Below, piece after piece: positions 4,101 through 10,100 of a stretch of DNA of 64,000 bases. Position 1 is the stretch's first letter. Every line of letters starts with the position of its first letter. The notes beneath the pieces are model-generated. The model saw nothing but the letters and a program-made list of their open reading frames with translations, was not told where the DNA came from and did not search any database. The position numbers and the translations under genes are program-made. Origin of the DNA: Macrostomum lignano (lineage: Eukaryota); contig NIVC01002515.1 of NCBI GenBank assembly GCA_002269645.1, positions 1-64,000 of the forward strand. Reading direction: 5' to 3'.

Positions 4101-7100
4101 AGGTGAGAGTCTGGGATGAAATGATGGAGACACAGGTAGGAGTCTGGAGCTTGGAGAGAGATGACGAAGACACAGGTGAGAGTCTGGGATGAAATGATGG
4201 AGACACAGGTAGGAGTCTGGAGCTTGGAGAGAGATGACGAAGACACAGGTGAGAGTCTGGGATGAAATGATGGAGACACAGGTACCAGGGTAGGAGTCTG
4301 GAGCTTGGAGAGAGATGACGAAGACACAGGTGGGAGTCTGGGATGAGATGATGGAGCTTGAAGAGAATCTCGGGTGAGATGAAGACACAATTAGGAGTCT
4401 GGGATCCGGTGATAGAGACACAGGTAGGAGTCTGGAATGAGGTGATGGAGATACAGGTAGGGAGTCTGGGATCCGGTGATGCAGACACAGGTAGGAGTCT
4501 GGGATCCGGTGATGCAGACACGGGTAGGGAGTCTGGGATCCGGTGATGCAGACACAGGTAGGAGTCTGGGATCCGGTGATGCAGACACGGGTAGGGAGTC
4601 TGGGATCCGGTGATGCAGACACGGGTAGGGAGTCTGGGATAAGGTGATAGAGACACAGGTAGGAGTCTGGGATAAGGTGATAGAGACACAGGTAGGAGTC
4701 TGGGATAAGGTTATGGAGACACAGGTAGGAGTCTGGGATAAGGTGATAGAGACACAGGTAGGGAGTCTGGAATGAGGTGATGGAGATACAGGTAGGGAGT
4801 CTGGGATCCGGTGATGCAGACACAGGTAGGAGTCTGGGATCCGTTGATGCAGACACAGGTAGGAGTCTGGGATTCGGTGATGCAGACACAGGTAGGAGTC
4901 TGGGATCCGGTGATGCAGACACGGGTAGGGAGTCTGGGATCCGGTGATAGAGACACAGGTAGGAGTCTGGAAAGAGGTGATGGAGATACAGGTAGGGAGT
5001 CTGGGATCCGGTGATGCAGACACGGGTAGGGAGTCTGGATAAGGTGATAGAGACACAGGTAGGAGTCTGGGATAAGGTGATAGAGACACAGGTAGGAGTC
5101 TGGGATAAGGTGATAGAGACACAGGTAGGAGTCTGGGATAAGGTGATAGAGACACAGGTAGGGAGTCTGGAATGAGGTGATGCAGATACAGGTAGGGAGT
5201 CTGGGATGTGGTGATGGAGATACAGGTAGGGAGTATGGCGAGAGATGATGCAAGCCCCATAAATATTTCAAATTTGTTTACAATAAAAAAACACACTAAT
5301 TCCAAACTACCTTACTAACACGCCCACTCACTGCCACACAATCGACACCAATTCAGGTACATAATGAGCCCCCTGCTAATCAAGGAACGCAAATTCGACA
5401 TCAGAGTGTACCTGTTGATTGCCAGCACCACTCCATTCCTGGTTCTCTACCATCGCGGCTACCTGCGATTGAGCATTCACAAATACGACACCAACGATGC
5501 CAACCTGTGCACCCACCTGACCAACCAGTACATCCAGAAGAAGGACCAACGCTACGAGGAGGTCAAGGATGACACGGTGTGGAGTATGGAGCAGTTCAAC
5601 GACTACCTGAACGGGTTACGAAAGCGCGATCCGGGGTCGAGCTCTGGTGCCAAACAGCCGCAGGCGGGTCCACCTGAAGACAACTGGGTGTTCCAGGGCA
5701 TGGAGCGCCAGATGAAGGCCATCCTGCAGCACATGTTCAACGCTGTCAAGCACAAACTGGCGGCCAGGCTGGGCTACTTTGAGCTGTACGGGATCGACTT
5801 CATGGTTGACAGCGACTACAAGGTGCGAAGCCCTCTGATCTGACCGACAGTCCAATAATAAAACTCCTTTGATCTTAGCGACACTTCAATAACAAAACCC
5901 CTTGATCTTACCGACACTCCAATAATAAAACCCCTTTTGATCGGACCGACACTTCAAAAATAAAACTCATTTGATCTTACCGACACTTCAATAATAAAAC
6001 TCATTTGATCTGACCGACACTTCAATAACAAAACCCCTTTTGATCTCACCGACACTTCAATAATAAAACTCATTTGATCTGACCGACAATCAAATAATAA
6101 AACCCATTTTGTTCTGACCGTCACTCCAATAATAAAACCCCTTTTGATCTTACCGACACTTCAATAATAAAACTCATTTGATCTGACCGACAATCAAATA
6201 ATAAAACCCATTTTGTTCTGACCGTCACTCCAATAATAAAACCCCTTTTGATCTTACCGACACTTCAATAATAAAACTCATTTGATCTGACCGACAATCA
6301 AATAATAAAACCCATTTTGTTCTGACCGTCACTCCAATAATAAAACCCCTTTTGATCTTACCGACACTTCAATAATAAAAGTCTTTGATCTTACCGACAC
6401 TTCAATAATAAAACTCATTTGAATTGACCGACACTCCAATAATAAAAACCCTTTGATCTGACCGACGCTCAACCCCATCCCGCAGATGTACCTGATCGAG
6501 GTGAACACAAACCCAGCCATGCACGTGAACTGCAAGCTGCTCAGCGATCTTCTACCGCCACTAATTGAGTCCACGATTCGTGAGTAGCTCTAGCAGCCTC
6601 CCAGGCAACTTTATAGATCAGCAATGCTCAGCAAACTATTAACAAACCCAAACCTTGCAGAGATCGCTCTGGAATGCTTTGAAAAGTCCAAACGAAGGCA
6701 GAGTCTGCTGCCGTTGAAGAATGCGCAAAACTTTCACGTGCTGCACTGCGGCGGGTCCGGCAACACCAGCACGCCCCGAGCACAGCGGGGCAGCTCGCCT
6801 CAGGTGGGTTGATACGAGGGGCACTATTAAAGTTCTGAGCCTGACCAAGATCTTATAGTGGCAAAGTGTTGAAACTTTAGGCTCTAAGAGCGCCACATGT
6901 TAATAGTCTATTGTCAACTTTTCAGAATTTTCTGCATTCCCTAAGTCCCACTGCACCATTTTATTTCCAGCACCCCATGGCATTTTCTCAAGAATTGAAG
7001 CTTGAGCACAGGGCAGTGATTAAATTTCTGACTCTGGAGGGCTCAAAGCCTGCTGAAATTCAAAGCCGCATGGCTAGTGTGTACGCTGACGCTGCCCCCT

Positions 7101-10100
7101 CATACGCCACCATAAAGCGCTGGGCAGCCGAGTTCAAGCGTGGCCGCGACTCGCTCGAAGATGACCCCCGATGTGGACGACCCCGGACTGCTGTCACTGC
7201 CGACAACATCCAGCGCATCCAGGCTCTGGTTGACAGTGACCAGCGGGTGAAAGTCAGGGAACTTGCGGCAGACACTGGACTCTCTGACCCGCAAGTCATT
7301 GAGATCCTGCACCAGCATCTTCATCTGTCCAAGGTTTCTGCCAGATGGATCCCACGAATCTTGACAAGGGACCAAAAGACCGCACGGGTGCAGTACTCAA
7401 AGCTTGTCCTGGACTCCTACGATCCGGACCCTGCCAACTTTCTGTCCTGCTGCGTGACCGGGGATGAGACGTGGATCCATCACCACGATCCCGAGTCCAA
7501 GCAGGAGTCCAAGCAGTGGCTGCCAGTTGGTTCACCTGCACCACTGAAGGCACGGACTGCATGCAGTGCGGGCAAGATTATGCTCACCGTCTTCTGGGAT
7601 GCCAAGGGCCCGCTGCTGCTGGACTTTCTACCGCACAAGCAGACAGTCACAGGCACCTACTACGCTGACCTGATCGCCCGTCTGCGCGAAGCAATTAAGG
7701 AAAATAGGCGAGGGATGCTGAGCCGAGGTGTTGTGCTGCTGCACGACAATGCACCGGCCCACACTAGCAGGATTGCCAAGGCTGCTGTCAGTGTCGCAGG
7801 GTTTCGAGAGCTGCCGCACCCAGCCTATTCACCAGACCTGGCCCCGAGCGACTTCCACCTGTTTCCACATCTCAAGCGGGCGCTCCGTGGACAGCGATTT
7901 GACACTGATGATGCGCTGAAGGATGCTGCAACTGCTTGGTTTGAGGGCTGCTCGGTGCAATTCTTCCAGAGTGGCATTGAGGCGCTGCGATCAAGATGCC
8001 ATAAGTGCATCTTGGTTGGGGGAGACTATGTTGAGAAAAGCTGATCTCACTTTGCCCATATCTCCTCTCTTTCATATTAAGGCTCAGAACTTTAATAGTG
8101 CCCCTCGTAGCGTGTCTTTGTTTTCCCGAAGAACATCAATTTAGTTAAAAGAGTGACACAATAATTAAAACAGGGATAAGAGGGATTATTTTTAAAGTTT
8201 GATATTTCGGGTTTACGTGTAACTGTTGGACATGAGGTTTCACCTGTTGGACATGAGGTTTCACCTGTTAGACATGAGGTTTCACCTGTTAGACATGAGG
8301 TTTCACCTGTTAGACATGAGGTTTCACCTGTTAGACATGAGGTTTCACCTGTTAGACACAGAGGTTTCACCTGTTAGACATGAGGTTTCACCTGTTAGAC
8401 ATAATGTTTCACCTGTTAGACATGAGGTTTCACCTGTTAGACATAATGTTTCACCTGTTAGACATGAGGTTTCACCTGTTAGACATGAGGTTTCACCTGT
8501 TAGACACAGAGGTTTCACCTGTTAGACATGAGGTTTCACCTGTTAGACACGGGGCCTTGCAGGTTAAGACAGTTTTTTCACCAGCTCGAAATACGGTTAG
8601 ATAAGATGCTTCACCTGTTCAGGAAGTCTTCTAACGAAAAAATAACGAACCATAATCAGAAACTAGCAAGACAAAAGTTTTAGAGATTGTTTCGACCTTC
8701 TTAAACTTCAAACTTTATTTAAAAAGAAAACTTTAAATAAGTATTTGTATTTTAATCAAATTCGAAGTCTCTACTCGACTGGAATAATAACTAACAGAAT
8801 TTAAATCTCCGGGGAAATCGATTTGAAATTAGGTGGACTAATTTGAATCGCTAATATGTACTTTTAGTGTAGCCGATCATTTAAATAAAATAATATTTTT
8901 TCAACTCACCCAGTGGACAGACAACAACTTTGCCATGAGTGCTAGAGCCAAGTCGGCCAGGGTAAGGCAGCTCACAATGTACTTTTTCATACAGCTAATC
9001 TCTTTGCCTACGACTCAGCTGAGCTGCATCTTATAGCGACACCAGTTTAAGTAGCTTACTTTTATTTTTCGCCGAAAAAACAATCAATTAATACTACTAT
9101 CAAGGCTATGACAATGTTATGCCCGTTAAAATGTGATTTTTTGCTTTAAAAATATAATATCACTACAATATTGTCATTCATTTCGTAAGAATAGGCACGT
9201 TTGTGGTTATAAAGTGTGAATATTTCGCAAATTTCATGTTCTTATGCAAGAGTGACATGCTAATGCCTTATTAAGTTCTAACTATCACACAGTCACAGAC
9301 ACAGACCATAAGACACAGTCACAGACACAGACCATAAGACACAGTCACAGACACAGACCATAAGACACAGTCACAGACACAGACCATAAGTCACAGTCAC
9401 AGACACAGACCATAAGACACAGTCACAGACACAGACCATAAGACACAGTCACAGACACAGACCATAAGACACACTCACAGACACAGACCATAAGACACAG
9501 TCACAGACACAGACCATAAGACACAGTCACAGACACAGACCATAAGACACAGTCACAGACACAGACCATAAGACACAGTCACAGACACAGACCATAAGAC
9601 ACAGTCACACGCAGACCATAAGACACAGTCACAGACACAGACCATAAGACACAGTCACAGACACAGACCATAAGACACAGTCACAGACACAGACCATAAG
9701 ACACAGTCACACACAGACCATAAGACACAGTCACAGACAGGCCATAAGACACAGTCACAGACACAGACCATAAGACACAGTGACAGACACAGACCATAAG
9801 ACACAGTCACACACAGACCATTAGACACAGTCACACACAGACCATAAGACACAGTGACAGACACAGACCATAAGACACAGTCACAGACACAGACCATAAG
9901 ACACAGTCACACACAGACCATAAGACACAGTTACAGACACAGACCATAAGACACAGTCACACACAGACCATAAGACACAGTTACAGACACAGACCATAAG
10001 ACACAGTCACACACAGACCATAAGACACAGTCACAGACACAGACCATTAGACACAGTCACAGACACAGACCATAAGACACAGTCACACACAGACCATTAG

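Follow-up and report, generated by a model that had tools for sequence, protein, structure and literature searches.

An apparently young mariner insertion with in-frame acceptor-like sites in intron 5 of a TTLL10 homeolog of Macrostomum lignano

Introduction

Is a protein that joins a tubulin-modifying enzyme to a transposase being born in the flatworm Macrostomum lignano? The question is raised by a mariner transposon located in intron 5 of a predicted tubulin polyglycylase gene, TTLL10, within a stretch of 64,000 nucleotides of M. lignano DNA (contig NIVC01002515.1 of assembly GCA_002269645.1, Mlig_3_7, positions 1 to 64,000 of the forward strand; hereafter the window). Acceptor sites carried by a transposon just 5′ of its open reading frame (ORF) gave rise to KRABINER and to most of the host-transposase fusions whose origin has been traced (bioRxiv 10.1101/2020.05.07.082677). 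The original prediction for this window, made from the sequence alone, had read the locus in a similar way, as an in-frame splice route that would fuse the TTLL10 catalytic domain to a complete transposase and generate a SETMAR-like chimera, an interpretation that is mechanistically reasonable but unsupported. The evidence presented here argues instead, with a probability of roughly 0.8, for a young, apparently autonomous mariner in intron 5 of one TTLL10 homeolog, and so for an ordinary insertion rather than a fusion gene that has been domesticated. M. lignano, a neopolyploid with three homeologous subgenomes (PMC10733133), is a model animal amenable to transgenesis and RNA interference.

Evidence for a recent mariner insertion in one TTLL10 homeolog

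The element is complete and has the same orientation as TTLL10 (coordinates of all features are listed in Table 1). Everything that the original prediction had described was located where it had been placed. Wherever a diagnostic mariner feature was tested it was found: a TA target-site duplication, terminal inverted repeats (TIRs), a length of ~1.3 kb, an ORF with helix-turn-helix (HTH) and DDE domains and a DD34D triad. The ORF is uninterrupted and its product matches the Pfam families HTH_48 (1e-05), Transposase_1 (1.8e-22) and DDE_3 (6.2e-09), aligns over its full length with the Mos1 structure 3HOS (E=1e-49) and has the catalytic residues D163 (VTGDE), D257 (HDNAP) and D292 (LAPSD), the last two separated by 34 residues, confirming the intact 355-aa DD34D transposase that had been predicted. 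The position originally given, in the sense orientation 9 nt past the phase-0 donor at 6803/6804, also holds when the inverted repeat is counted with its TA; the element proper begins at intron nucleotide 12. The window was searched for a second mariner copy and none was present elsewhere within it. Judged by these features the element is an apparently autonomous DD34D mariner, and it is probably still mobile.

The homeologous TTLL10 locus (L003, contig NIVC01000667.1, encoding protein P0241) is collinear with the window on both sides of the insertion point and has a base-precise empty site with one TA, ...GCCTCAGGTGGGTTGA-TA-GCGTGTCTTTG... (in a shorter excerpt, ...CCTCAGGTGGGTTGA-TA-GCGTGTC...). 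A check for the insertion in homeologous copies, proposed with the original prediction, was therefore negative. A second copy of the element, at 9845-11137 in contig NIVC01000364.1 (L004), differs from the window copy at 8 of 1293 nt (99.4% identity), and this divergence of 0.6% is below the 1.9-2.4% single-nucleotide polymorphism divergence reported for the subgenomes of M. lignano (PMC10733133). The insertion is thus very probably recent, later than the divergence of the homeologs. Within the ORF, the two copies have 3 nonsynonymous and 2 synonymous differences; the comparison of nonsynonymous and synonymous changes (dN/dS) with a dispersed copy, also proposed originally, has with 5 differences too few for significance, as is true of the ~10 differences between the TTLL10 copies, and no constraint is detectable. 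Given the existence of a 99.4%-identical second copy, the intact ORF is a trace of recent insertion, not of host constraint, and neither the ORF nor the perfect TIRs and TA duplication are evidence of host selection.

The TIRs of the window copy are perfect and those of the L004 copy have two substitutions within the first three bases of the 5′ TIR (9845-9847). The latter copy, which is annotated and has transcript support, may therefore be less mobile than the copy in the window. The locus points to activity of this mariner family in M. lignano since genome duplication, and the insertion can serve as a marker by which the TTLL10 homeologs are told apart.

The deposited gene model bypasses the element. 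The TTLL10-like exons of the window are 100% identical to the M. lignano protein PAA57224.1 in GenBank (P0121, BOX15_Mlig002014g3), whose deposited contig sequence, bases 1-21819, matches the start of the window exactly, and seven exons were located by mapping the 718-aa homeolog protein, P0241, onto the window by tblastn. Both proteins read ...RAQRGSSPQ/ALRYSNVQ across the exon 5/exon 6 junction, so that 10558 is the annotated partner of the donor at 6803 and, in the model deposited for the window copy, the mariner is wholly removed within a 3754-nt intron 5. Exons 2-4 cover the Pfam TTL domain, of the ATP-grasp type, and the top named matches are the TTLL10 proteins of molluscs, amphioxus and vertebrates, consistent with the host gene being TTLL10, with predicted tubulin polyglycylase activity. 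A literature search with the identifiers Mlig018546, Mlig002014 and Mlig029923 found no paper.

The acceptor site 5′ of the transposase ORF

Two acceptor-like sites are present in the 5′ leader of the element, ACTTTTCAG ending at 6925 and TTTTATTTCCAG ending at 6970, the latter 6 nt 5′ of the transposase ATG. With YTNCAG sequences occurring in the window at a density of ~1.7 per kb per strand, ~0.3 would be expected in the 162-nt leader and the 2 seen are a mild excess. The putative site at 6925 is lost in 4 of 6 related elements. For the site at 6970, the AG is retained in 3 of the 6 related elements, which are 87% identical to the window copy, and is replaced by CAAG in the other 3.

Evidence that the 6970 acceptor is used comes from PAA84702.1 (P0242, Mlig018546g1), the one protein annotated for this mariner family in M. 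lignano, which is encoded by the L004 copy, is flagged as 'partial' and begins HPMAFSQ.... Its coding sequence (CDS) starts at 10001 of L004, equivalent to 6971 of the window, the base directly after the TTTTATTTCCAG acceptor, although the frame is open for 20 further codons 5′. A 5′-partial CDS that starts at this base places the 5′ end of the transcript at most 2 nt from the AG. No other annotated gene is located within 10 kb of the L004 copy, and there is no annotated upstream exon. In TBONE, the pipeline used for annotation, gene starts are taken from reads that bear the spliced leader (SL), and transcripts are cut at SL sites (PMC5730564). SL trans-splicing occurs in M. lignano, with a 35-nt SL that ends in ATG and a trans-acceptor motif [T/C]TNCAG (PMC8629364), to which TTCCAG at 6965-6970 conforms. 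The predicted trans-spliced product, ...TTGCATG/CACCCCATGGCA, would put the ATG of the SL in the reading frame of the transposase (ATG/CAC CCC ATG). The 6970 acceptor is thus probably real and used in vivo and, given the annotation boundary and the motif, its role there is most likely SL trans-splicing of the transposase mRNA, which explains the boundary of P0242 better than cis-splicing because no gene is annotated within 10 kb.

The nearest protein overall to the window transposase is P0242, with 3 aa differences, listed in the protein searches only under P0001, the representative of its 90% cluster; next are unnamed proteins from metagenome and SRA assemblies at ~93% (the P0001 cluster), and then matches at 63%. 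The corresponding elements (L001, L005-L009), 87% identical in nucleotide and 93% in amino acid sequence, were found in six metagenome or SRA assemblies (ERZ27314298, JGI 3300047299, SRR9924793, SRR35509992, SRR31729319 and ERR11593397), and each has TIRs and TA. The presence of complete elements with 87% identity in six unrelated assemblies means that the family is also present in other hosts. When these relatives, from Logan, JGI and ENA, were checked for an SL, each proved to be a genomic copy flanked by TIRs and TA, without SL sequence. A scan of JGI metagenome contigs for an SL-mariner junction returned four chance matches, none with mariner homology.

In-frame splicing from TTLL10 into the element

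As had been predicted, both acceptor-like sites are in frame with the transposase: splicing 6803>6926, with removal of a 122-nt intron, or 6803>6971, with removal of a 167-nt intron, would leave a frame that is open, without a stop, through the whole transposase. This geometry is by itself unremarkable, because the prior for frame compatibility is ~1/3 and YTNCAG is common. Searches with the transposase, with the TTLL10 catalytic region and with a junction-spanning peptide identified no protein that has both a TTL domain and a transposase, and a TTLL10-mariner junction was likewise found in none of the gene models, proteins or contigs searched. The fusion isoform originally proposed therefore has a splice route and an acceptor that is probably real, but no supporting isoform was found and the deposited model joins 6803>10558. 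The SETMAR-like reading is unsupported: the homeolog has an empty site, the second copy is 99.4% identical, the deposited model skips the element and these searches gave no TTL-transposase protein. Domestication of that kind has left no sign, and the insertion is too recent to have allowed it.

Several observations count against dismissing the fusion and for this reason weigh against an ordinary insertion. The negative result for a fusion protein is a weak one, as the search with the junction peptide also missed P0121 and P0241, which hold 118 aa of the query. The two acceptors of the element are the first YTNCAG sites 3′ of the exon 5 donor and, by sequence, seem a match for the authentic acceptor, ctcactcaaacag, or better. 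Exon 5 is identical in the homeologs and the RNA-seq reads used for annotation were multi-mapped (PMC5730564), and the 6803>10558 junction can therefore not be assigned to the mariner-bearing copy. Cis-splicing into the element is accordingly plausible in mechanism, judging by these sites, and a minor or tissue-specific chimeric isoform may exist.

Even so, we regard detectable chimeric transcripts as improbable. A selected, SETMAR-like fusion gene is far less probable, with a chance of a few percent at most, because the insertion is young and copy-specific. Of the marks by which Cosby et al. recognise fusion genes, a fusion model, orthologous conservation and detectable purifying selection on the transposase are all lacking here, and the locus is best described as being at step (i) of the host-transposase fusion pathway.

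Frameshifts in exons 1 and 2

The original prediction had noted an apparent frameshift at ~3830 that would abolish the chimera. The frameshift is present in the assembly, as CAGGC where the homeolog has CAGGGC, and as a consequence the deposited CDS begins no earlier than 3934 (MGRIVQR). Exon 1 has another three deletions that break the frame, at 1186, 1251 and 1263, which had been overlooked. A chimera with the entire TTL domain, as claimed, therefore stands only if all four are assembly errors, which is plausible but unproven. If they are real, any chimera would be without the N-terminal half of the TTL domain.

All four are deletions of only 1-2 nt, confined to the initial 3.9 kb of the PacBio/Canu contig. 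Only 2 substitutions distinguish exons 1-2 from the homeolog, and exons 3-7 (~1.5 kb) are without a frameshift. At the only catalytic-domain difference that could be polarised (RVYL[L/F]), the ancestral L is found in the window copy and the derived F in the homeolog. A protein from the ML2 assembly, P0139, has the window-type variants (QQQKQ, RVYLL, SGAK) with exon 1 read in frame, and inaccuracies are acknowledged for the Mlig_3_7 assembly (PMC10733133). Binned counts of indels between the window and the homeolog, used to look for an excess of errors at the contig end, were dominated by the intron minisatellites. On this evidence, assembly errors seem the likelier origin of the four frameshifts, ahead of pseudogenisation.

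Of the ~10 coding substitutions between the TTLL10 copies in exons 3-7, 8 are nonsynonymous, which suggests that constraint may have been relaxed on one or both duplicates. The derived F of the otherwise 'intact' homeolog is at a conserved position of the TTL domain, within 13252-13717 of L003 (5357-5822 of the window). The variants of exons 3 and 4 that tell the copies apart are L/F at RVYL[L/F], A/G and P/Q in SG[A/G]KQ[P/Q]Q and K/Q in NC[K/Q]LL.

Weighing the alternatives

That the TTLL10 copy yields an in-frame chimera of TTL domain and full transposase, by cis-splicing 6803>6971 or 6803>6926, is in our view unlikely. Either junction would preserve an open reading frame, and the 6970 acceptor, probably functional in vivo, is 167 nt from the donor as compared with 3.75 kb for the annotated acceptor, in a gene that uses an intron of only 81 nt (intron 4). 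An acceptor with a cis donor upstream also tends to be cis-spliced (Conrad et al. 1993, as cited in PMC8629364), and known fusions came about through transposon-borne acceptors just 5′ of the ORF (bioRxiv 10.1101/2020.05.07.082677). The junction is nevertheless in no gene model, protein or contig found, the insertion is copy-specific and very young, so that any chimera would be incidental and unselected, and real frameshifts would truncate its TTL domain. There is no canonical GT[GA]AG donor inside the element and a chimeric transcript must therefore end in or after it; the ~60-nt 3′ untranslated region has no canonical AATAAA by eye, no systematic scan having been made. The same acceptor could instead exploit host transcription, with SL trans-splicing of the TTLL10 pre-mRNA at 6970/6971 generating a stand-alone, capped transposase mRNA and aborting the TTLL10 transcript. 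The CDS boundary of the L004 copy at the acceptor, with no annotated upstream exon or gene within 10 kb, the logic of TBONE (PMC5730564), the SL sequence and acceptor motif (PMC8629364), the in-frame SL ATG and the precedent of SL-bearing transposon transcripts in Hydra (PMC12220107) are all consistent with this. We consider it rather unlikely, as the upstream cis donor would normally favour cis-splicing, half of the 87%-related elements have CAAG in place of the acceptor AG, so that the site is not obligatory in the family, and the scan of JGI metagenomes for the junction pattern gave chance matches only.

Decay of the TTLL10 copy, with all four frameshifts real, the mariner one more lesion and no functional product, is possible but on balance doubtful. 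It would account for the four frame-breaking deletions in exons 1-2 and for the N-terminal truncation of the deposited CDS, and the high fraction of nonsynonymous substitutions in exons 3-7 gives no sign of purifying selection since duplication. It is less readily reconciled with lesions that are exclusively 1-2-nt deletions, clustered at one end of the contig with so few substitutions alongside, with the frameshift-free remainder of the coding region, with retention of the ancestral L in the supposedly decaying copy or with P0139, in which exon 1 is in frame; the acknowledged inaccuracies of Mlig_3_7 also argue for error. A mis-join that placed the mariner in the TTLL10 intron artificially was considered, as there are many chimeric scaffolds in Mlig_3_7 (PMC10733133) and the element is repetitive. 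This was rejected as extremely improbable: the empty site in the homeolog is base-precise, both flanks are collinear with it and exactly one TA is duplicated, the signature of genuine integration.

The reading that we prefer thus remains an ordinary and recent insertion. The mariner would have inserted at a TA, nucleotides 10-11 of intron 5, in one TTLL10 homeolog after the homeologs diverged, bringing with it the in-frame acceptor 6 nt 5′ of the transposase ATG that belongs to the element family and that, in M. lignano, most likely serves SL trans-splicing of the transposase mRNA. Placed 167 nt past a host donor, this acceptor makes the splicing of a chimeric TTLL10-transposase mRNA possible in principle. 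Capture of such an SL-type acceptor in cis by the exon 5 donor, to generate a glycylase/transposase chimeric mRNA as the other homeolog keeps the ancestral function, is quite improbable; if true, step (ii) of the birth of a host-transposase fusion would be seen at its start, in a neopolyploid and with an enzyme as the host partner. Chimeric transcripts, if they exist, would represent the earliest stage of a fusion, with a young and possibly polymorphic insertion, an element that is still mobile and a host function buffered by the redundant homeolog, and they would connect the SL acceptors of transposons with exon capture. Otherwise, this is an ordinary recent intronic mariner insertion.

Other features of the locus

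Every intron of the TTLL10 copy has its own minisatellite, with units of 33, 33, 35, 21, 26 and 23 nt, and there are long tetranucleotide tracts in intron 1 and past the stop codon (Table 1). The majority of these arrays can also be aligned to the homeolog. In the UniProt model from the ML2 assembly, P0139, exon 5 is joined to a short exon (8619-8645, + strand) that ends ...SGSLLTKK* and is located 3′ of the mariner; this appears to be an alternative or spurious terminal exon within intron 5.

Distant from TTLL10, 16 genomic bases at 45411-45426 are identical to the 3′ end of the SL (CTCAATTTATTGCATG) and are located 25 nt 5′ of an intronless ORF of 951 aa (45452-48307, + strand), which has a weak C2H2 (zf-met) match. 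This arrangement has the appearance of a retrocopied mRNA that had been SL-trans-spliced.

Table 1. Features of the TTLL10 copy and of the mariner element in the window
Feature	Position	Strand	Remarks
TTLL10 exon 1	1179..1329	+	start codon at 1179; from tblastn of P0241 and comparison with L003
Frame-breaking deletions in exon 1	1186 (-1), 1251 (-2), 1263 (-1)	+	relative to homeolog (L003)
TTLL10 exon 2	3469..3953	+	N-terminal part of TTL domain
1-nt deletion	3829..3830	+	CAGGC in window, CAGGGC in homeolog; shifts frame
TTLL10 exon 3	5357..5822	+	core of TTL domain, Pfam TTL 3.8e-26
TTLL10 exon 4	6486..6579	+	TTL Pfam domain ends here
TTLL10 exon 5	6661..6803	+	complete last codon (CAG); same sequence in homeolog
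Intron 5 donor, GTGGGT	6804..6809	+	authentic, phase 0; used in both deposited gene models
Left TA of target-site duplication	6813..6814	.	single TA in homeolog, L003 14967-14968
Mariner element, complete, 1293 bp	6815..8107	+	same orientation as TTLL10
5′ TIR, 28 bp, perfect	6815..6842	+	
Acceptor-like site ACTTTTCAG	6917..6925	+	in frame
Acceptor TTTTATTTCCAG	6959..6970	+	in frame, 6 nt 5′ of transposase ATG
Transposase ORF, 355 aa + stop	6977..8044	+	DD34D residues D163/D257/D292
3′ TIR, 28 bp, perfect	8080..8107	+	
Right TA of target-site duplication	8108..8109	.	
TTLL10 exon 6	10558..11064	+	ALRYSNVQ..., polyglutamine-rich tail; annotated partner of 6803 donor
TTLL10 exon 7	11511..11819	+	carries stop codon
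Minisatellites in TTLL10 introns	2194-3411, 4378-5238, 5831-6470, 8223-8549, 9287-10409, 11153-11439		
Long (TCTG)n/(TGTC)n tracts	1342-1755, 11918-12693		intron 1; past TTLL10 stop codon

Comparison with known systems

With the TTLL10 of other animals, a polyglycylase of tubulin/NAP, the M. lignano protein shares 48-53% identity over the whole catalytic region, its best named matches being molluscan and chordate TTLL10. It differs in a polyglutamine-rich C-terminal tail that is specific to flatworms and, for the copy in the window, in the four frame-breaking deletions of the assembly and the mariner in intron 5. The element itself resembles Mos1 and other autonomous mariners in having a length of ~1.3 kb, 28-bp TIRs, a TA duplication and a single ORF of ~350 aa with HTH_48 and Transposase_1/DDE_3 domains, and its VTGDE, HDNAP and YSPDLAPSD motifs line up with those of 3HOS. 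The closest named mariners, from the crustaceans Eriphia verrucosa and Bythograea thermydron, are however only ~52% identical, and the strong, apparently used acceptor in the 5′ leader distinguishes the M. lignano element from other mariners. A parallel for that acceptor is found in Hydra, in which ~30% of the Iso-Seq reads from transposable elements carry the SL (PMC12220107). In both animals the mRNA of a transposable element apparently gains the host SL at an acceptor 5′ of the ORF, although for the M. lignano mariner this is deduced from an annotation boundary and a motif.

The systems to which the locus is most usefully compared are KRABINER, in which the KRAB domain of ZNF112 is joined to Mlmar1, and SETMAR, in which a SET domain is joined to Hsmar1. 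The locus in the window differs from these in several respects: it has no documented fusion transcript, the homeolog lacks the insertion, a second genomic copy matches it at 99.4% identity, the element has perfect TIRs and is probably still mobile, there is neither orthologous conservation nor purifying selection, and the host partner is an enzyme, TTLL10, rather than a chromatin or transcription-factor domain. What it shares with KRABINER and SETMAR is a full-length mariner in the sense orientation within a host intron and a pre-existing, frame-compatible acceptor 5′ of the transposase ORF, the arrangement that constitutes step (i) of the model for the birth of such fusions (bioRxiv 10.1101/2020.05.07.082677).

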